Source: Rebecca billardiae RCC1528
Lineage: Eukaryota > Protista > Haptophyta
DNA: 64,000 bases
Reading direction: 5' to 3'
Assembly (NCBI GenBank): GCA_965240325.2
Contig: OZ251226.1
Coordinates: 62,001-126,000 of the forward strand
Shown: one piece after another, positions 15,390-64,000 of the stretch
Numbering within the stretch: position 1 is the stretch's first letter
How the letters are laid out: the number at the start of each line of letters is the position of its first letter
Notes under the pieces: generated by a model
The model's input: the letters and a program-made list of their open reading frames with translations, nothing else
Told to the model about the DNA's origin: nothing
Database searches by the model: none
Translations under genes and position numbers: made by a program

Positions 15390-16573
15390 TCACCTCTCCT
15401 CGACGGCGATGGCCGCGACGCCGGCCGCGAGGGCGCCCTCCGCCGTCGCCTGCTCCGGCTGCGGGTCCCGCCGCGACGTGGAACGGGGGCGATGGGGCGC
15501 GGGCGCGGCAGTGGATGGGGTGAGGATCTGCGTGCCCGCGCGCGGCAGCCCGCGCGTGGCTGCGCGTGCGCGCTCGCGTGCGCGCAACGGCCGCGCGGCG
15601 CGTCGCGCACCTTGGCGTGCGCGCTGCCGGCCGGCTGCGGCTGCTCGTCCGGCTGCGCCGACTTGGCGTCCGCCCGTCGCCGCCCGAGCGCGTCGACGCA
15701 CTTGTCGATCGAGACGGTCTCGGAGATGGCGTCCATCTTGGGCACGTACGTGGTGAAGTGCGGCGTGGCGAAGTGCGCCTCGAGGTGCGCCATCGACGCC
15801 CACTCCTCCGTGATCACGAAGCGCGTCGGCGAGTCGGCCGACTTGACAAAGTTGTACTTGAGCACGCCGGGCTCGCGCCACGTGTGGTGCGCGAGCTTCT
15901 CCGCCATGGCGAGCCACTCGGCCTGGTTGGCCTCAGGCACGTCCTTCGTCACGATCACGTGCACCGCGCCGGGCGCCATCGGCGCGCTCGCCGCGTCCTC
16001 CGCCCGGGCCTTCTCGGCGGTCGCGGCGTCGTCCGCCTTGGTCGTGAGCAGCGGGTGCAGCGACTTGCGCCCGTCGACGTAGACGGCGACCCACTCGGCG
16101 AGGCGCAGGCCCAGGCGCTCGCAAGCGAGCTTGTCGTGCTCGTTCCGCGGCTGCTTCGCCACCACCGCGCCGTAGTGCAGCGTGTGGATCTTGTCGACGT
16201 AGTCGGTCACGCCGAAGCTGAGGAAGCCAAAGTTCATCAGCACGGTCGACATGGCGAGGCAGGACATCTCGGCGCCGCCGCCGTGGCCGCCCTGCGAGGA
16301 GAAGACGGTGCACAGCTTGCCGTCGCACTTGTTCCAGTTGTCCGCGGCGAACTCGTCCCACCACTTCTTCATGCGCCACGCGATGCCGCCGAGGTTGGTC
16401 GGCGTGCCGACAGCGAGGCCGTCCGCCCACAGCACGTCTGCGTGCGTGCAGTCCTCGGTGGAGCGCAGGCGGATCTCGTGGCCGGGGATCTGCGAGGCGC
16501 CCGCGGCGACGAGCTTGCCCATCTCCGACGTGCAGTCCGTGTTCGAGTGGTAGAAGACGAGGATGCGGCCCAT
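15390..16573 (-). CDS. WrbA-like flavodoxin-fold NAD(P)H oxidoreductase fused to an ABM (antibiotic biosynthesis monooxygenase-like) domain; intron 15610-15459
   Basis: Flavodoxin/WrbA part: MGRILVFYHSNTDCT, ADVLWADGLAVGTPTNLGGIAWRMKKWWD, GKLCTVFSSQGGHGGGAE, LHYGAV, ACERLGLRLAE. ABM part: TWREPGVLKYNFVKSADSPTRFVITEEWASMAHLEAHFATPHF. Confidence 0.88.
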
Positions 16574-17056: not shown

Positions 17057-19832
17057 ATGACCGCGACCACGAACCGCCCGCTCCCGCTCGTCGGCCTCGA
17101 CACGCTCGGCTCGGGCGACGAGACGGAGGACATCACCAAGACGATCCGCACGGCCATCCGCGCCGGCGTCCGCCTCTTCGACTGCGCCTCGCTCCACGGC
17201 AACGAGGAGGAGGTCGGCGCGGCGCTGCGCGCCGCGATCGACGCGGGCGAGGTGTCGCGCGAGGAGCTCTACGTCGTGGCCAAGCTGTGGTGCGCGGACG
17301 CGGCGCCGGAGGACGTTGAGACCGCGTGCCGCCGCACGCTCGACAACCTCGGCCTCGACTACCTCGACGAGTACGCCATGCACTGGTGCGCGCGCCGCGC
17401 CGCGCCGCGCCGCGCGCAAGTCTGCGCGCGCTCGTGAGGCCGGAGCCCCACCGCGCGCACGCGCGCCCGCGCGCTCCCGTCTCACGCGCGCCGCGCGCTC
17501 CACTGCGCGCCGCCCACCGCCGCGCGCAGGCCCGTGCGCATGCGCCCCGGCTCGAACGCGCTCACCTTCTCGCTCGTGCACGGCGCGGAGCGCGCGCCGA
17601 TCGCTCAGACGTACGGCGCGATGGAGAGGCTGGTGGAGGGCGGGCTCGTGCGCGCGCTGGGCGTGAGCAACATGGACGCGCGCATGCTCACCGAGCTCGC
17701 CGCCGACTGCGCCGTCAAGCCGCGCTCCCTCCACGTCGAGGCGCACCCGTTCCTGCCACAGCCGGAGCTGCTGGGCGCGTGCGGCGCGCTGGGCGTGCGG
17801 CTGGTGGCGCACAGGCCGCTCGGGCAGGTGTGCGCGGCGCCGCGCGCGTGGGGGCGCGCGGCCCCGGCCGACGGCGCGCTCACCCGCGTGCCCCGCCCGT
17901 GCCACGATCTCGCGCCGCGCCCGCGCGCAGGAGGACGGCGGCGCGCACACGGACCTGCGCCTGTACCCGGCTGTGCAGGCGGTCGCGCTGGAGGCGAACA
18001 AGTCCGCGGCGCAGGTGCTGCTGCGCTGGGGCGTGCAGCGCGGCGCGAGCGTGGTGCCGCGCTCGGCGCCCACCACCGCCCTCGGCGTGCTCGACTGGCA
18101 GCTCTCCGCCGAGCAGATGGGCCGCCTCGACGCGCTCGCGCGCGGCCTCCGGTTTGCGCGCGTGCCGTGGTTCGACTTTGACGCGCGGCCGCCGCTCAAC
18201 GTGAACGTGGCGCCGCCGGGGCAGCCGCTGCTCAAGGCGGGCGAGGAGGACGCGCGCGGCTTCTACCGCAACACGTTTGGGCGCGACGGCAAGCCGCTGC
18301 ACACCGAGGTCGTCATCCGGCGCGGGCTGCTCCAGCGCGACGCGCTCGCGGCGCACGCGAAGCACTTCCTGCCCGAGAAGTGCCACGGCGCGCCCATCCA
18401 CGTGCTGACGGACAGCGTGGTGGACAAGATCTACGGCGAGCAGGTGGTCGCCGGGCTGCGCGCGGCGGGGCTCGAGGTGCACAAGACCGCGATGCCCTCC
18501 GACCTCGCCGACGCCGCGGGCGAGCCCTCGACCGAGCACCACAAGACGATGGCCGTGCTGAGCGCGTGCGCGGACGAGATCCTGTGCAACGGCATCAACA
18601 AGAACTCGGCGATCGTCTCGCTCGGCGGCGGCGTGGTGAACAACCTGGCGGGCGTGCTCGCGGGCATGCTGTACCGCGGCATCGCGCTCGTGCACCTGCC
18701 CACCACCACCATGTCCACCTTCGACCCGGCGCTCGACTTCAAGCAGGCGGTCAACCACCCGCTCGGCAAGAACCTGCTCGGCTGCTACTACCCGGCGAGC
18801 ACGATCGCGATCGACCCGGACGCGCTCTCGACGCTCAGCGAGCGGCACATCCTCAACGGCATCTCGGAGGCGCTCAAGCACGGGCTGACGCAGTCGCGCG
18901 AGCTCACCGACATGATCGTCGACCCGCTGCGCGCCGGCCGGCCGCTCACCGACGGGCAGTACCTCGAGCGCATCTGCAAGGCGGCGCTCGAGATCAAGGC
19001 GCCCACACTCGACGCGTACGAGAAGACGGACTACAACGAGGTGTGCCCGCAGTACGGCCACGCGATCGGGCACGCGGTGGAGCACCTCTCGTGGAGCGGC
19101 CCGCTGCACCGCCCGCTGCTGCACGGCGAGGCGGTGGCGATCGGCATGTGCGTCTCCGCCGAGATCGCGCTGCGCAAGGGCATCTGCACGCAGGCGGTCG
19201 TGGACGAGCACTACGAGCTGATCGGCGCGACCGGGCTGCCCGCGTTTGTGCCGCGCTCGATGGACGCGGACAGGCTGGTGCGCCAGATGCGCTTCGACAA
19301 GCACACGCTCAAGAGCCCGGCGATGGGGCTGTGCGCCGCGATCGGCGGCATGGCCACCGACGCGGAGCGCGGCACCTACTTCTTCGAGACCAGCGCCGAC
19401 GAGCTGCACGCCGCGCTGCAGGCGAACGCGGCGCGGCGCGACCTGACGGAGGGCTGCGTGCAGTGCGCGCCCGAGCCGGCGCGCGCGCCTGAGGCCACCG
19501 CCGGCGCCGACGCCCACGCGCCGCCGCCCGCCGCCGCCTCCGCCGCCGGCACGCGGCCCGCCTCGCCCGACCCCGATGCCGAGGCCTCGCGCCCCGCCTC
19601 GCCCGAGCCCTTCGACCCCTCGGAGCTGCCCGCCGTGCAGCTGCCGCCGCCGCTGCCGTTTGTGCGCGCGGCCGACGAGGCGGTGCTCAACAAGTACCGC
19701 ACCGAGTACGCGCAGTACCGCAAGGGCGGCGCGTGGGGCTCGCGCGGCGAGCTGACCAAGCTCGCCAAGCGCGCGGGCACGATGAAGCCGGCGGCGCCGG
19801 TGGCCAGCCTGGTGGTCGGCGCATCCGCATGA
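17057..19832 (+). CDS. Aldo-keto reductase fused to a sugar-phosphate cyclase (DHQS superfamily, 2-deoxy-scyllo-inosose synthase-like); introns 17386-17529 and 17828-17930
   Basis: AKR part: PLVGL, AIRAGVRLFDCA..GNEEEVGAALR, REELYVVAKLW, LGLDYLDEYAMHW|P, MERLVEGGLVRALGVSN, EAHPFLPQPEL, KSAAQVLLRWGVQRG..VVPRS. Cyclase part continues in the same frame: SLGGGVVNNLAG, YRGIALVHLPTT, FKQAVNHPLGKNLLGCYYP, GISEALKH, YGHAIGHAVE, LHGEAVAIGM, MRFDK. Confidence 0.9.
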
Positions 19833-23918: not shown

Positions 23919-24097
23919 GCCGCGTCGTCGTCGTCGTCCGCGAGCAGGTGCACATGCGAATTTCGACCGACCAGCTCCCACCCGCCGCCGTCGGCGGTGG
24001 TGGCGGCGGCGGCGGCGCCCGCGGGCGGCGCGCCGGCGCGCGCGCTCGCGGCGAGCGCGCGCGCCTGCGGCCCGGCGACGCCGTGCCCGAGCCGCTG

Positions 24098-24137
<40 letters not shown>

Positions 24138-26113
24138 GGCGCGCGCCGCTGCGCCGCCGCCGACGGCTCGGGCAGCGCGTCGCGCGCGCACAGCTCGGCG
24201 CGCGCGCGCGCGCGCACGGCGGGCGCGGCGTGCAGCGCGGCGGCGGCGGCGGCGGCGGCGGCGTGCCCGCGCGCGTACCCCGCCACGGCCTCGCGGCGCC
24301 GCGCCTGCACGGCCAGCGGGTACGGCGCGCCCTCGAGCGACACAAGCAGCGGCGCGCGCGCGGGCAGGCTGCGCGCGCGCGGCGGCGGCAGCAGCGGCGG
24401 CGGCGCGGCGGGCGCGGCGGGCGCGGCGGGCGCGGCGGGCGCGGCGGGCGCGGCGGGCGCGGCGGGCGCGGCGGCGGGCGCGGCGGCCGCCGCCGAAGCC
24501 GCCGCCGCCGCCACCGCCGCCGCTGCCGCCGCGCGCGCGCCGCCGCGCGCGCCACCGCCGCGCCGCCGCCCGGCCGCCGCGGGCTCGGGCGGCGGGCCGG
24601 CGACAACGACGGGTGGCGGCGGCGGCGCGAGCGCGGCGCCACCGCCACCGCCGCCGCCGCCGCCGCCGCCCGGCGCAAGCAGGCCGCCGAGCGCGGCGTC
24701 CGCGCCCGCGTCCGCGTCGAAGGGCCCGGGCCGCGTGTAGTCCGCGTCGAGGAACTGCTCGATCGGCGGAGCGCTGCTCACGCCGCCGCCGCCGCCGCCG
24801 GGCGCGCCGGCGCGTGCGGCCGCGGCCGCCGCCGTCGGCTCGGCGGCGGGCGCGGCGCCCGCGGCGCGCGGCGGCGGCGGGTGCGCGCGCGACGCGGCCG
24901 CGCCGGTGGCGAGGACGGTGAAGCCGCCCGCCGTGTCTGCCACGACGAGCCGCTCGCCCGTCGCGTCCCAGCTGCGCGCGCGGCAGCGGGGCGGGGGCGC
25001 GGCCGCGCGGGCGGGCGGCGCGCGCGTGAGCCGCAGGCGCGGCGCTCAGCGCGCGGGCACGGCGCGCGCACACGCACGGCGCGCGGCAGCCGCGCGCAGC
25101 AAGCACGCGCGCGCACACACACGCACCCACGCGCACACACACGCGCGCAGGCAGGCAGGCAGGCAGGCCGAGCACCGGCCGCGTGCGCGCGCGCGCCCAC
25201 CGGCCGTCCACCAGCGCATAGTCCTCTGGCGCGATGTCGCCCAGCCGCGCGCGCAGCAGCCGGCCCGCCGCGCCGCCGCCGTCCGCGTCGCCGCCCGCGC
25301 CGCCGGGCGCGCCGTACGTGTGCAGCGCCTCGCCGCTGCTCACGTCCCACAGCACGAGCACGCCGTCGTACCCTGCACCCGCGCGCGGGCGCGCGCGCGC
25401 GCGTGGGCGTGTGTGTGGGTGCGGCGCAGTGGGTGGGCGCGCGGCGGCTGCCGCGCGCCGCCGCCCGGCTCGGCGCCGCGCGTGCCGCGCGCACCCGCCG
25501 TCATCACCACCTCGGGCCAGCGCGGGTGCGTGTCCGTCACGAAGATCTGCTGGCTGTGCCCGCTGCGACGGCGGAGGGGGGCGGCGGCACGGGCGCGCGC
25601 CAGCCAGCGCGGCTGAGCACCGCCCGGCCGCGGCCGCACGGCGCGCGCGCGCACCCCGCCGCGCGCGCGCGCGCGCGCACCGCAGCACACGCAGCCTTGC
25701 GCCCGACTCCGCCTCCCACACGTGCAGCGCGCCGTCCGTGTGCGCGGTCACGGCGAGGCAGTCGGCCAAGCCCGCCCACACCGCCATGTTGACCAGCGGC
25801 GGCTGCTGCGCCGCGGGCGCGCCCGGCCGCGCTTGCTCGCTGCGCGCCACGCGCGCACGCGCGCGCGCGCGCCCGGTGCGCCGCACGGGAGGCGGAGGGG
25901 GCGCCGCGCCGCGCCTCAGCTCAGCTCAGCGGGGGCGGCGCGCGGCGGCGGGCCGGGCGGGCGCGGCGCGGCGCGGCGCGGCGCTTGAACGCACCCGAGT
26001 GTCTTGAGCTGCCACTCCTCCGCCATGCTCGCGGCGGCGCACGCCCACGGGGCGCCGGAGACGAGCGCTGCGCGCGCGGCCAGCAGCGCGCTCGCGGCGG
26101 CCGCGCTGAGGCG

Positions 26114-61419: not shown

Positions 61420-64000
61420 GCAGGGTGGTGCGCGATGCACCGCGCCATCTTCGCGCGGCAGCTCGGCGTCGTCTCGCTGCTGCTCAAGGCGTCGGCGCAC
61501 GGCAGCGGCGCGCTGCTCGCGCCGCTCGACCGCGCGGGCACCTCGCCGCTCGAGCTGCTGCGCGGCCCCGCGTCCGCGGGCGCGCCAGCCGTGCACGGCC
61601 GCGCAGGCAAGCTGCTCGTGTGGGGCCACGACTCCAACTTCACGCTCGGGCTCGCCACGGGCGCGGGCGTGTCGGACGTGCGCGTGCCCACTGTGGTCGA
61701 CCTGACCGACAGCGACACCGAAGACGATCAAGACGACGACGACGACGATGACGGCGGCGGCGACGGCGGCGGCGCGGACGGCGCGCCGGCTGACGCCGAC
61801 GCCGACGCCGACGCCGCCGAGCGCCCTCGCCCGCGGCGGCGCGCGCGCGGCGCGCTCGCGTGCGCGTCGGCCAAGTTCCACGCCCTCACGCTCACGGCGG
61901 ACGGGCGGCTGTACGCGAACGGCGTGGGCCGCGGCGGCCGGCTGGGTCTCGGCGACGAGTCGACGGCGGTGCTGCCCGTGCGCGTGCGCGGCGCGCTCGG
62001 CTCTGTGCGCGTCGTGAGCGTCGCCGCCGGACTCGCGCACTCGGCGGCCGTCACGTGCGCGGGCGCGGTGTTCACGTGGGGCGCGGCGGCGTCCGGGGCG
62101 CTGGGGTACCGCACGGCGGAGGACGTGCTCACGCCTCGGCGCGTGCCGCTCTACGCGCCGCCGCCCGCGGGCGGCGGCGGCAGTCACGGCGCGGCCGGCA
62201 CGCGCGCGGCCGCGCCCGCGCTCTCGCGCGGACCCTCGCTCGACTCGTGCGCCGAGATTGCAATCTCGGTGGCGGCGGGCGAGGCGCACACGCTGGCGCT
62301 GAGCGCGCGCGGGCGCGTGTACGCGTGGGGCTCGGCGGCGAAGGGCGCGCTCGGCCTGCCGCTCGGCGGTGCGGGCGGTGCGGGCGCGGCCGGCGCGGCG
62401 GGCGGCGCGGCCGGCGCGGCCGGCGGCGCGGGCGCGGCCGGCGGCGCGGCCGGCGGCGCGGCCGGCGGCGCGCTGCAGCTGCTGCCGCGCCGTCTGGAGC
62501 TGTTCGACGGCGGGCGCGCGGCGTCCGCCGCGGCGTGCGCGAGCGGCGGCGCGCCCGCCTCCACGCCGCGCGCCGCCCCCGACGCGCCCTCCGCGGCCGC
62601 GCTCGTGACGGCCATCTCCGCCAGCGGCCACCGGTGCGCGCTGCTGAGCGCGGACGGGGGCGCGTACTGCTGGGGCGAGGGGATCGGCGCGCAGCCCGTG
62701 CGCGTGCGCGTGCCCAAGGCCGAGCCGCCCGCGCCGCGCGGCGCGCCGCGCCGCTGCCGCGGCCGCCGCGTCGTCTGCGTCTCCGTCGGCTTGTCGCACT
62801 TTGCCGCCGCGTGCGCTGACGGGTGCGCGTGGGCGTGGGACGGGGCGCTGCAGCCGCGCGCGCTGCACTGCGCCGGCCGAGGCGGCGGCGGCGCGGGGCA
62901 CATCGTGCAGGTGAGCGCGGGCAAGTACGTCACGCTCGCGCGCTCCGCCGAGGGCGGCGTGTACTCCTGGGCCGAGAACTGGTCGCAGCTCGCGCCGCCG
63001 CCCACGGCTGTGCGCGTGCTCGGCGCGTCGCAGGCCGCCTTTGTGGGCGCGGGCGGCGAGGGTCGACTGTGCGCGGTGGTGACGGAGGCGGGCGTGGGCG
63101 TGCCGCGCGAGCTGCGCGCGGGCGCGCGCGGGGCGGGCGGCGCGCCGCGCACGCTGCAGCACCTCTGCATGGCCGCGCTCGCCCCGCACGTCACGCCCGC
63201 CAACGCGGTGGCGCTGTGCGCGCTCGCCTCCGCGCGCGCGCTCGGCCCGCTCGGCGCGCACGCCGCGGCGGTCGCGGCGGCCAACCTGCCCGCGCTGCTG
63301 GCGTGCACGGAGTGGGCGGCGCTGCCGCAGCCCGCGCTCGAGGCGCTCACGCGCGCGTGCGGCAAGGAGCCCGCGCCGCACCCGCGCGACGACGCCGACG
63401 ACGACGGCGTCGAGTGCTGCGGGCGCGCGCCGGCCGCCGCGCGCGGCGCGCCGCCGCGCGCCGCCGCGCCGCCGTCGGCGCGGCCCGCTGGCGGCGTGGG
63501 CGGGCGGCGCGGCAGCGCGCGCGAGCGCGGCGCGCTCGGCGCGGCGCAGAGCGCCTCGCCGCACGCGCCGACTGCCGACGCGCGCGCCGACGCCGACGCG
63601 GCGGGCACGCCCTCGCCGCGCGCGCCGCACGCGACGCCGGCGCGCGGCGCGCCGCACGGCGCGGAGTCGGCGCGCGCCGAGGGCGGCGCGCGCGGCGGCG
63701 GGGCGGAGGGTGCGGGCGCGGGCACGCGCCGCGCGCTCGGCGGCGCGCTCGCCGAGGCGAGCGCGCGCGCCGAGCCGCCCGCCACCGCCGCCGCCGCGCG
63801 GCAGCAGCGGGGCTTCGCCGTCGCGCCCGCAGCCGGCGCGACCGGCGCCGAGCGCGCCGCCGAGCGCGCCGCGCCGCAAACGCCGCCGCCGCCGCACGCC
63901 GCGCCGCCGCCTTCGGCTTCGGCTTCGGCTTCGGCCTCGTCGCTCGAGCAGCAGCTCGCCGCCATGTCGAGTGCGTCCATCGCGGGCTGGGGGTACACGC
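60918..64000 (+). CDS. IBTK-like ankyrin + RCC1-repeat protein, 3'-truncated; introns 61041-61234 and 61320-61423
   Basis: Spliced DDNGVTPLM|HAASCGRMDVVAFLLERGADMSAQDLESG|WCAMHRAIF, then LLVWGHDSNFTLG, AKFHALTLTADGRLYANGVGRGGRLGLGDE, VAAGLAHSAAVT..GAVFTWG, VAAGEAHTLALSARGRVYAWG. This order is typical of IBTK/Btb1. Confidence 0.85.

Follow-up and report, generated by a model that had tools for sequence, protein, structure and literature searches.

A reductase–cyclase fusion gene in the haptophyte Rebecca billardiae encodes a member of a distinct sugar-phosphate cyclase family that shares a branch with 2-deoxy-scyllo-inosose synthase

As the window we analyzed a 64,000-nucleotide stretch of the Rebecca billardiae RCC1528 genome (GCA_965240325.2, contig OZ251226.1, positions 62,001 to 126,000 of the forward strand). 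It contains a predicted gene on the forward strand (17057-19832) with three exons and two GT..AG introns, whose spliced coding sequence of 2529 nt encodes a fusion protein of 842 aa with an aldo-keto reductase (AKR) as its N-terminal half and a sugar-phosphate cyclase as its C-terminal half (Table 1). The gene model is based on splice signals, homology and GC3, and the two introns that the initial annotation had placed in the AKR part are real as frame-restoring GT..AG junctions. GC3 steps up at 17057, from 0.64-0.80 upstream to 0.98-1.0 downstream, which places the start codon there and leaves the protein without an N-terminal presequence; the two-domain fusion enzyme is probably cytosolic. 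Alignment with fused homologues reveals a His (SLHGNE) at the position of the AKR catalytic Tyr, and the fused reductase may therefore be impaired or altered. The Ala/Pro-rich C-terminal tail has neither a Pfam match nor a counterpart in the homologues.

The product of the divergent gene about 480 bp upstream joins a flavodoxin-like domain to an ABM domain. This pairing is absent within 8 kb in Pavlovales CCMP2436 and in four other eukaryotic loci, and a comparison of five eukaryotic cyclase loci found no conserved neighbours. The surroundings of the window gene contain no ebo genes.

Table 1. Features of the fusion gene and its upstream neighbour (positions within the window; residues in domain numbering)
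Feature	Position	Strand	Evidence or remark
Flavodoxin-like domain fused to ABM domain (context)	15557..16573	-	Pfam ABM 1.4e-16; Flavodoxin_2 weak, 0.0036
Exon 1: start codon and N-terminal AKR part	17057..17385	+	ATG at 17057; GT donor after 17385; Pfam Aldo_ket_red 3.3e-16
Intron 1, GT..AG	17386..17529	+	Excision restores the frame and the AKR "MHWP" motif; product aligns with fused homologues
Exon 2: mid AKR domain	17530..17827	+	Pfam Aldo_ket_red 2.8e-10
Intron 2, GT..AG	17828..17930	+	Spliced product collinear with fused homologues P0009, P0023 and P0025
Exon 3: AKR C-terminus, conserved linker, cyclase domain, Ala/Pro-rich tail, stop	17931..19832	+	One open frame
Sugar-phosphate cyclase domain, DHQ_synthase and DHQS_C fold	18243..19451	+	Pfam, AlphaFold2, Foldseek (TM 0.73-0.79 to DHQS, DOIS, EEVS and DDGS structures)
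GGGVVNNLAG, glycine-rich turn	18624..18653	+	Second Asn common to DOIS (DHQS: Asp); first Asn family-specific
GMLYRGIALVHLPTT	18663-18707	+	Motif in frame in the cyclase ORF
FKQAVNHPLGKNLLGCYYP	18738..18794	+	Superfamily-conserved Lys; KQ common to DOIS; preceding Asp-Phe family-specific, replacing DHQS Gly-Gly
SEALKH, metal-ligand Glu and conserved Lys	18864..18881	+	Invariant E213 and K216
YNEVCPQYGHAIGH	19032..19073	+	Invariant Glu270, invariant Gln274, metal-ligand His, second conserved His
QYGHAIGH	19050-19073	+	Gln codon CAG at 19050-19052
LHGEAV, second metal-ligand His	19119..19136	+	Invariant H298-G-E
C-terminal tail, 116 aa, Ala/Pro-rich, predicted coding	19482..19829	+	GC3 0.94-0.97, then 0.74 past the stop

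The C-terminal half belongs to the sugar-phosphate cyclase superfamily, with both Pfam domains present, a fold like the one in 3-dehydroquinate synthase (DHQS), and preserved metal and NAD positions. DHQ_synthase and DHQS_C are matched with E-values of 1.1e-26 and 3e-21, and PF01761 and PF24621 score 93.2 and 76.3 bits against gathering cut-offs of 24.2 and 27.6. In an AlphaFold2 model of 18231-19481 (mean pLDDT 93.8, pTM 0.92; TM about 0.78 to DHQS and DOIS) the folded part comprises roughly residues 5 to 407, so that the range first proposed for the domain, 18290-19440, is essentially correct. All motifs are in frame within the ORF that opens at 17973, and those quoted in the initial annotation, including the Gln codon, lie where it had put them. 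The superfamily-conserved positions are all kept (D61, E102, K105, the GGG turn, R149, T158, D165, K171, N181, E213, K216, K256, H277, H281 and H298); the conserved catalytic, metal and NAD positions form an intact set. The Lys in FKQAVNHPLGKNLLGCYYP we take to be the catalytic Lys of DHQS. The three metal ligands, Glu (SEALKH), His (YGH) and His (LHGEAV), are present as had been noted, and they are invariant among the relatives described below.

These relatives and the window cyclase form a coherent and distinct family, here called the QYGH family, whose signature consists of GGGV(V/I)NN, FKQA(V/I)N and QYGH, together with an invariant Glu that precedes the Gln by four residues. The Gln had earlier been read as a possible mark of a new subfamily, and this reading is borne out: among the members gathered by word search and genome scan, it is found in all ~135 relatives with a readable motif and is therefore not a private mutation of the window gene. 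The source annotations call nearly all members "3-dehydroquinate synthase", so that the definition of the family corrects a widespread mis-annotation, and one red-algal member is auto-annotated as 2-deoxy-scyllo-inosose (DOI) synthase (DOIS). The literature was searched for DOIS in eukaryotes or algae, for cyclohexanetetrol, quercitol and bradyrhizose, and for BtrC Glu243; it yielded no account of the QYGH family or of the residue roles, and a 2026 review of the cyclase field lists no eukaryotic DOIS-like class (PMC12904256).

Members are spread over many protist lineages, and among bacteria they occur in Patescibacteria, Proteobacteria and Chloroflexi. Those from eukaryotes form one clade (100/100) that includes haptophytes, stramenopiles, red algae, euglenids, a chlorarachniophyte and choanoflagellates; the generalization that enzymes with DOIS signatures are essentially bacterial thus fails for the QYGH branch, with its large eukaryotic clade of at least six protist groups. 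In the maximum-likelihood tree this clade is nested among bacterial members, which suggests a bacterial origin of the whole eukaryotic clade, one that would be old. The initial annotation had read the contrast between an intronless cyclase and an intron-containing AKR as consistent with horizontal acquisition followed by fusion. In the orthologue from Pavlovales sp. CCMP2436, however, the cyclase part contains at least three introns, and the intron argument for a recent transfer consequently fails. Further observations likewise lend this scenario no support: an exon of the same orthologue spans the AKR/cyclase junction, GC3 is 0.98-0.99 in the AKR and cyclase halves of the window gene alike, and ORFs or transcripts that carry the fusion without interruption are found in distant organisms. 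AKR::cyclase fusions are present in at least eight eukaryotic proteins; a complete transcript of this kind is found in the euglenid Anisonema acinus, and two contigs carry the fusion as uninterrupted single ORFs.

The position of the family was analyzed against eight DHQS, five DOIS-type, three sedoheptulose-7-phosphate cyclase and one EboD-like reference. In place of the curated BtrC, NeoC, RifG, ValA, Ava_3858 and EboD sequences, PGAP-named plasmid genes were used and checked through their gene neighbourhoods: adjoining genes for DegT aminotransferase, PIG-L deacetylase, glycosyltransferases and radical-SAM proteins validate the DOIS references, and the single EboD-like reference is labelled solely via a TatD-family neighbour. 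A careful maximum-likelihood tree separates the DOIS references and the QYGH family from DHQS, the sedoheptulose-7-phosphate cyclases and the EboD-like sequence at 100/99, and an AU test rejects a grouping of the QYGH family with core DHQS (p 0.004), in agreement with the earlier claim that, of DOIS, DHQS, EEVS and DDGS, the window domain is nearest to DOIS. On their side of this split, the QYGH family (100/98) and the DOIS references (100/99) each form a group of their own; the tree is unrooted, and "sister of DOIS", like the observation that the family is not nested in the DOIS clade, is to be read with the root on the DHQS side. An attempt at rooting with E. coli GldA and YqhD as outgroups produced branches of 8-10 changes per site and a basal polytomy.

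Similarity scores are less discriminating. The best PDB match of the single sequence is BtrC, a DOIS, at 141.7 bits versus 135 for the top DHQS, while a search with the family profile reverses this order, with DHQS structures at 225 bits and BtrC at 200, so that raw scores cannot assign the class. Likewise, Foldseek returns TM values of 0.71-0.79 to DHQS, DOIS, EEVS and DDGS structures alike, and structure comparison cannot discriminate between them. Since the profile slightly favours DHQS and Foldseek favours no class, the affinity to DOIS rests on the tree and a few motifs.

The Pfam and source names of the domain, together with the profile scores, might suggest a divergent DHQS of the shikimate pathway, a reading that we consider highly improbable in view of the tree and the AU test. 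Against the aroB equivalog TIGR01357 the domain scores 195.8 bits, below the cut-off of 305. The eight DHQS references carry GGGxxxD, GGK(T/V) and NxGHT, in line with the DHQS signatures given in the initial annotation, whereas in the window protein and 39 family relatives the DHQS Arg is replaced by an invariant Glu, the Asn by Gln, GGK by DFK and the Asp of the GGG turn by Asn. For the Arg and Asn of R-x-x-x-N-x-G-H-T, and for G-G-K-T at the catalytic Lys, we assume the roles seen in the A. nidulans DHQS structure; the Arg would presumably be the ligand of the DAHP carboxylate. The fusion to an AKR and the absence of a targeting presequence also argue against DHQS, and the bacterial members belong to clusters for glycans and CDP-alcohols, where the scanned neighbours include no aro genes. 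The probable product of the window enzyme is a carbocyclic sugar alcohol, not aromatic amino acids.

There is similarly very little to recommend a sedoheptulose-7-phosphate cyclase (EEVS, EVS or DDGS type) for the synthesis of sunscreens or C7-cyclitols. The fold is common to these enzymes and the window domain (Foldseek), and EEVS and DDGS genes are known in algae (PMC4426668), but branches of 100/99 and 100/97 place the three PGAP-named sedoheptulose-7-phosphate cyclases far from the QYGH family. They have Asp in place of Gln274, Pro in place of His281 and Met in place of Lys256, and PDB ValA and DDGS score lowest in both the single-sequence and the profile searches.

The window cyclase, then, shares a strongly supported branch with DOIS and is not a canonical DOIS. 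The motifs named for the latter in the initial annotation, GGGxxGN, KQAVN and EYGHT, are indeed present in BtrC (PDB 2d2x) and in the five DOIS-type references. The window protein has the final Asn of the first motif as well as KQAVN, and the Gly before that Asn is itself Asn in the whole family. In addition, at least seven positions in the active-site region differ from DOIS. Among these are Glu270, which aligns with the conserved Arg of DHQS, and Gln274, where DOIS has a conserved Glu and DHQS a conserved Asn; this invariant Glu/Gln pair corresponds to Ala-or-Gly/Glu in DOIS and Arg/Asn in DHQS, and residues 268-274 form a single short helix in the AlphaFold2 model. Mutagenesis of BtrC reportedly tied Glu243, the Glu of EYGHT, to phosphate elimination. 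The alignment suggests either that the active-site carboxylate may have shifted by one helical turn or that the substrate may differ near C1/C2.

A bona fide DOI synthase, converting glucose 6-phosphate to 2-deoxy-scyllo-inosose by BtrC chemistry with a conservative Glu-to-Gln exchange, would be a narrower form of the explanation favoured below, and one that we regard as possible but rather unlikely. It would account for BtrC as the top single-sequence PDB match, for the DOIS side of the 100/99 branch, for the automatic annotation of the red-algal member, and for the Asn of GGGxxxN, KQAVN, Y-G-H and H155, a combination that only DOIS shares with the window protein. It is less readily reconciled with Gln274 and with N137, D169, F170, H217, E270, K357 and H358, all invariant in the family and missing from the five DOIS-type references, or with the separate 100/98 group. 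Moreover, bacterial loci with scanned neighbours contain no 2-deoxystreptamine genes such as that for DegT aminotransferase, and contain an SDR gene instead.

This coupling to a ketoreductase is pervasive. An orthologous SDR adjoins the cyclase or lies within ~4 kb of it in 19/19 complete bacterial loci, and neighbours in the bacterial loci also include a kinase, nucleotidyltransferases, and a CDP-alcohol phosphatidyltransferase or glycosyltransferases; a triple fusion, NTP_transferase::cyclase::SDR, exists as well (P0104/L011). Together with the repeated fusion to an AKR, this makes a route from hexose 6-phosphate via deoxy-inosose to deoxy-cyclitol likely. The best explanation, in which we have good though not full confidence, is accordingly an NAD+- and metal-dependent cyclase of the QYGH family that works with the fused AKR or another reductase to make a deoxy-cyclitol; the substrate, product and physiological role of the window enzyme are those that we infer as follows. 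By analogy with DOIS, (I) the cyclase would oxidize a hexose 6-phosphate at C4, (II) phosphate elimination, re-reduction, ring opening and aldol closure of the carbocycle would follow, giving a deoxy-inosose, a cyclohexanone polyol, and (III) the ketone would be reduced to the deoxy-cyclitol, either by the AKR at the N-terminus of the fusion or by a different reductase. Glucose 6-phosphate is the default guess for the substrate on the same analogy, and in the alga the deoxy-cyclitol would most plausibly serve as a compatible solute.

Alternatively, the enzyme may have a new substrate or product: another hexose 6-phosphate epimer, an amino-sugar phosphate, or cyclization with an extra dehydration, feeding a deoxy-cyclitol such as 1,4/2,5-cyclohexanetetrol. 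We put this forward only tentatively, as it is purely inferential. Two new invariant acidic residues, D169 and E270, and the invariant H217 lie along the region with which DHQS and DOIS would touch the C1/C2 end of their substrate, as we assume from the DHQS and BtrC structures. EboD, which acts on mannose 6-phosphate (PMC12904256), may serve as a precedent for new substrate specificities in the superfamily. There are reports of cyclohexanetetrol in haptophytes and diatoms (PMC7998644, PMC5334607), both of which have the QYGH family, and our literature search turned up no paper that names a gene for its biosynthesis. On the other hand, choanoflagellates, euglenids and red algae have the family as well, and the tetrol requires a further deoxygenation for which no candidate enzyme was identified.

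Extending the favoured cyclase–reductase route, we can offer as a speculation, and a doubtful one, that the QYGH cyclase, with its fused reductase, is the enzyme still missing at the entry to the deoxy-cyclitol osmolytes made by marine algae, with 1,4/2,5-cyclohexanetetrol as the prime candidate. The chemistry would then be unlike that of DOIS, with a relocated carboxylate (Glu270/Gln274) and possibly another sugar phosphate or an added dehydration, and the bacterial cousins might make a cyclitol that is activated with CDP and goes into envelope polymers or solutes.

The classes of the superfamily are few (DHQS, aminoDHQS, DOIS, EEVS, EVS, DDGS and, since 2024, DEIS), and each new cyclase class opened a pathway, for example to gadusol in vertebrates or to the ebo product. 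The QYGH family is large and sharply defined, has its own invariant active-site residues, and spans protists and bacteria. If its product is a deoxy-cyclitol, three matters become directly testable: (I) the route to algal cyclitol osmolytes such as cyclohexanetetrol, (II) the cyclitol that some candidate-phyla bacteria activate with CTP, and (III) the takeover of the role of the catalytic Glu of DOIS by another residue.

Among known systems, DOIS shares with the window cyclase the fold (TM 0.73-0.78) and several motifs named above that DHQS lacks (the Asn ending the GGG turn, K-Q-A-V-N, Y-G-H and His155). It differs in the signature Glu of EYGH, which is Gln here and Glu in all five DOIS-type references, in its partners, a DOI aminotransferase and aminoglycoside genes rather than an SDR/AKR ketoreductase, and in that the QYGH family is present across eukaryotes. 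DHQS (AroB; TIGR01357; PDB 3zok, 1dqs) has in common with the family the fold, the NAD, metal and phosphate-binding positions, and Lys357, which is common to DHQS only, but is set apart by the replacements and the equivalog cut-off described above. EboD, recognised only recently, is a DHQS-like cyclase on a hexose 6-phosphate (mannose 6-phosphate) found in bacteria and algae (PMC12904256, PMC5133447); the EboD-like reference, however, groups with the sedoheptulose-7-phosphate cyclases, far from the QYGH family, and its signature reads D-F-G-H. In the case of the bacterial module alone, a functional analogy may be drawn between its CDP-alcohol phosphatidyltransferase, nucleotidyltransferases and kinase and the IPCT/DIPPS system of di-myo-inositol phosphate. 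The logic of IPCT/DIPPS leads from a cyclitol phosphate via a CDP-cyclitol to a phosphodiester. There, the cyclitol comes from myo-inositol-phosphate synthase, whereas in the bacterial module it would come from a DOIS-like cyclase and an SDR.

Residue-by-residue alignment reads GGGLTGN, KQAVN, GKNLVGFYYP and EYGHTIGH in BtrC (PDB 2d2x), a synthase of 2-deoxy-scyllo-inosose (DOI synthase, DOIS), and GGGVIGD, GGKT and NLGHTFGH in the 3-dehydroquinate synthase (DHQS) structures 3zok and 6lk2. Our annotated references, drawn from plasmids and E. coli K-12, comprise three PGAP-named DOIS, two DOIS-like genes adjoining amidinotransferases, three sedoheptulose-7-phosphate cyclases, eight DHQS or DHQS-family genes adjoining other aro genes, and one EboD-like gene adjoining a TatD-family hydrolase gene. 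Every DOIS-type reference carries GGGxxGN, KQ and EYGHT, and every DHQS reference GGGxxxD, GGK and NxGHT. The class signatures given in the initial annotation are thus confirmed on BtrC, 3zok, 6lk2 and the collected references, and the cyclase motifs that it quoted from the window are all in place, with CAG at 19050-19052 as the Gln codon. Two of the three PGAP-named DOIS adjoin PIG-L deacetylase, glycosyltransferase and radical-SAM/SPASM genes (one of these also a DegT aminotransferase), which are typical 2-deoxystreptamine neighbours. We note that plasmid DOIS-like genes with EYGHT in Streptomyces sp. NBC_00853 (L009:3755-4906) and Mycobacterium sp. SMC-8 (L031:4947-6119), with no annotation beyond hypothetical protein or iron-containing alcohol dehydrogenase, adjoin inosamine-phosphate amidinotransferases; these loci are possibly guanidino-deoxycyclitol clusters.

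The class of the window cyclase cannot be read from raw similarity: BtrC comes top in a single-sequence search, DHQS comes top in a family-profile search, and Foldseek finds all classes alike. Three lines of evidence agree with the initial annotation that the enzyme is not a DHQS. The domain reaches 195.8 bits with the NCBIfam aroB equivalog, below the cut-off of 305. The conserved DHQS Arg, which we take to be the ligand of the DAHP carboxylate (Arg264 of A. nidulans DHQS), is replaced by Glu, the Asn by Gln, and the Gly-Gly before the catalytic Lys by Asp-Phe; these three changes are common to the window protein and all 39 of the 39 relatives aligned with the references. Finally, forcing the window cyclase and its relatives, here called the QYGH family, together with core DHQS is 30.8 log-likelihood units worse and is rejected (AU p = 0.004).

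A careful IQ-TREE analysis (57 rows, 419 columns, LG+C20+F+G4; support as ultrafast bootstrap/SH-aLRT) separates the DOIS-type references plus the QYGH family from all DHQS, sedoheptulose-7-phosphate cyclases and the EboD-like reference with 100/99 support, and recovers both the DOIS-type references (100/99) and the QYGH family (100/98) as groups. All eukaryotes form a single clade (100/100), sister to a nucleotidyltransferase-fused bacterial group (99/95), with the remaining bacterial members on deeper branches; a quick tree of 89 rows agrees. The DOIS-like placement is carried by this 100/99 branch of an unrooted tree and by a few motifs. Rooting with GldA and YqhD, whose branches are very long, left a polytomy at the base, so that "sister of DOIS" is conditional on a root at the DHQS side.

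Used as the query of a word-indexed search, the cyclase domain matched 4168 proteins at E <= 1e-10, and the best 89 of these 4168 matches are eukaryotic or metagenomic (46-72% identity). Family members occur in haptophytes and other lineages, among them Pavlovales sp. CCMP2436, Prymnesium parvum (three paralogues), Pleurochrysis, Entomoneis, Ochromonadaceae, Chrysophaeum, Pelagophyceae sp. CCMP2097, Porphyridium (two paralogues), Erythrolobus, Rhodomonas, Norrisiella, the euglenids Anisonema and Jenningsia, and the choanoflagellates Salpingoeca and Monosiga. Next in rank after the best 89 come bacterial proteins of ~625 aa with a nucleotidyltransferase fused N-terminal to the cyclase. In a scan that took a single genome from each prokaryotic species, 20 loci emerged, in Patescibacteria, Gammaproteobacteria MAGs, Sulfurovum, Trinickia, Paraburkholderia, Burkholderia diffusa, Rhodopseudomonas palustris BisB18, Chloroflexi, Bdellovibrionales and others.

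GGGV(V/I)NN, FKQA(V/I)N and QYGH are kept in essentially all members covering the region, eukaryotic and bacterial alike, which makes Gln274 (cyclase-domain numbering) a hallmark of the family. A 74-sequence alignment contains 55 invariant positions, including N137, N138, D169, F170, K171, Q172, E270, Q274, K357 and H358. Alignment with the references reveals that N138, Q172 and H155 are common to DOIS only and K357 to DHQS only, while N137, D169, F170, H217, E270, Q274 and H358 are absent from DOIS and DHQS references alike. In the predicted model, invariant Glu270 lies four residues before Gln274 on one short helix (residues 268-274). Judged by these residues, the window cyclase is neither an ordinary DOIS nor a DHQS but belongs to its own family. 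The family appears to be undescribed: no account of it was found in the literature searched, a 2026 superfamily review (PMC12904256) included.

The open frame that encodes the cyclase contains PF01761 (1.1e-26) and PF24621 (3e-21), and Pfam finds the remainder of the aldo-keto reductase (AKR), a ketoreductase, in two frames upstream. Predicted splicing gives a CDS of 2529 nt (842 aa) and restores the AKR "MHWP" motif. At the ATG (17057), GC3 rises from 0.64-0.80 upstream to 0.98-1.0, then stays at 0.94-0.99 as far as the stop before falling to 0.74; this profile supports the start at 17057, a protein that lacks an N-terminal presequence, and a C-terminal tail that is coding. This 116-aa, Ala/Pro-rich tail behind the cyclase (19482-19829; coding-like GC3 of 0.94-0.97) has no Pfam match and no counterpart in homologues. 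GC per 2 kb of the window is 60-86%, and 24001-26000 and 62001-64000, at 84-86%, are extreme even for the R. billardiae genome. The open frame of the divergent neighbour continues to 15170 via a low-complexity, Arg-rich stretch; this neighbour is not kept beside the cyclase at the other eukaryotic loci compared, including Pavlovales sp. CCMP2436.

Features of the window gene and its divergent neighbour
Feature	Coordinates	Strand	Description
Flavodoxin-like::ABM fusion gene	15557-16573	-	Head-to-head (divergent) neighbour of the window gene; ABM, antibiotic biosynthesis monooxygenase domain
Intron 1 of window gene	17386-17529	+	Canonical GT..AG
Intron 2 of window gene	17828-17930	+	Canonical GT..AG
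Open frame, 619 codons	17973-19832	+	AKR end plus the two Pfam halves of the dehydroquinate-synthase fold

Horizontal acquisition followed by fusion had been proposed for this gene, from an intronless cyclase beside an intron-bearing AKR. Since the tree places all eukaryotes within bacterial diversity, eukaryotes probably gained the family by a single old transfer from bacteria. The intron pattern, however, lends no support to the proposed acquisition and fusion, because the CCMP2436 cyclase part holds at least three introns, codon-position composition is identical across both halves of the window gene, and the AKR::cyclase fusion is common to diatom-like, chrysophyte-like and euglenid sequences in one 100/99 subclade. 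GC is ~47% at the CCMP2436 locus (L040) versus ~72% in the window gene. We note that the public NCBI annotation divides the CCMP2436 AKR::cyclase into two genes (L040:5271-9270, MU631333.1). One exon (L040:6956-7285) runs from the end of the AKR through the linker into the start of the cyclase, and the split is consequently an annotation error in one fusion gene. In sum, the core of the initial annotation holds (a DOIS-like enzyme rather than a DHQS, and a new subfamily, since the Gln that replaces the DOIS Glu is invariant alongside further family-specific residues), and its evolutionary detail is wrong.

The strongest clue to function comes from two unrelated ketoreductase classes tied to this one cyclase family, which points to a ketone product that is immediately reduced to a cyclitol. 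In bacteria the partner is an SDR (Pfam adh_short), usually the next gene downstream; tblastn with the SDR of a bacterial module (L014) finds an orthologue (38-66% identity) adjoining or within ~4 kb of the cyclase at 19 of 19 complete-ORF bacterial loci. A nucleotidyltransferase::cyclase::SDR triple fusion in a Patescibacteria MAG (P0104, L011:1037-3208) is a Rosetta-stone link between cyclase and ketoreductase. In Patescibacteria and Gammaproteobacteria MAGs (L001, L012-L018; e.g., L014:6469-11521) the genes stand in a conserved order (CDP-alcohol phosphatidyltransferase, nucleotidyltransferase::cyclase, SDR, APH-type kinase and second nucleotidyltransferase), with teichoic-acid-type glycerophosphotransferases also close by at one such locus. 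This module looks like a pathway to a CDP-cyclitol and parallels the IPCT/DIPPS route to di-myo-inositol phosphate. Standalone cyclase and SDR pairs (L020-L022, L024, L026-L028) occur in Trinickia, Paraburkholderia, Burkholderia diffusa, Rhodopseudomonas, Chloroflexi and Bdellovibrionales; the Trinickia pair (L020) lies amid GT4 glycosyltransferases, and DUF5672 adjoins in the last three, surroundings that suggest a cyclitol-containing surface glycan.

The eukaryotic partner is an AKR N-terminal to the cyclase, found as eight near-full and four N-terminally cut fusions among the 120 matches listed. The fusions include a complete Anisonema acinus transcript, and two environmental contigs carry uninterrupted AKR::cyclase ORFs (L002:1701-3731, L046:2841-5024). 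Alignment with fused homologues places His at the AKR catalytic Tyr position of the window gene (SLHGNE, 17195-17212). Tyr is retained by the fusions P0009 and P0025, and the fusion from Anisonema carries Asp. The reductase part may be altered or, in some lineages, inactive.

Without a presequence, the window protein is probably cytosolic. The closest genomic match is Pavlovales sp. CCMP2436, where the genes keep the same order and each aligned segment shows 40-87% identity. The earliest reported source of 1,4/2,5-cyclohexanetetrol is Monochrysis (Pavlova) lutheri. PMC7998644 and PMC5334607 (the latter citing Fujii 1995 and Garza-Sanchez 2009) report the tetrol among the solutes of the haptophyte Isochrysis galbana and, in diatoms, as an osmolyte that responds to salinity, and the literature searched names no biosynthetic gene for it. 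This tetrol is a plausible candidate target: by our own chemical reasoning, DOI could yield it through β-elimination of the hydroxyl that lies para to CH2, followed by two ketone reductions. The QYGH family also occurs beyond haptophytes and diatoms, in choanoflagellates, euglenids and red algae.

DOIS chemistry is established and serves as the template for the steps proposed here. C4 of a hexose 6-phosphate would be oxidised by NAD+, phosphate would be lost by elimination across C5-C6, C4 would be re-reduced, and ring opening followed by aldol closure would give a deoxy-inosose, from which the AKR or SDR would form a deoxy-inositol. In alignment with the references, the NAD-, metal- and phosphate-contact positions of the superfamily are all kept in the window cyclase, an enzyme of known type for which a concrete and testable function is proposed. 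In contrast to the pairs Ala-or-Gly/Glu in DOIS and Arg/Asn in DHQS, the QYGH family carries Glu270/Gln274. Either Glu270 may stand in for the DOIS Glu, with Gln274 hydrogen-bonding like the DHQS Asn, or the new acidic D169 and E270 may recognise a substrate that differs at its C1/C2 end, which would mean another epimer or an amino sugar as substrate. The altered substrate of the latter would have a parallel in EboD, which acts on mannose 6-phosphate (PMC12904256).
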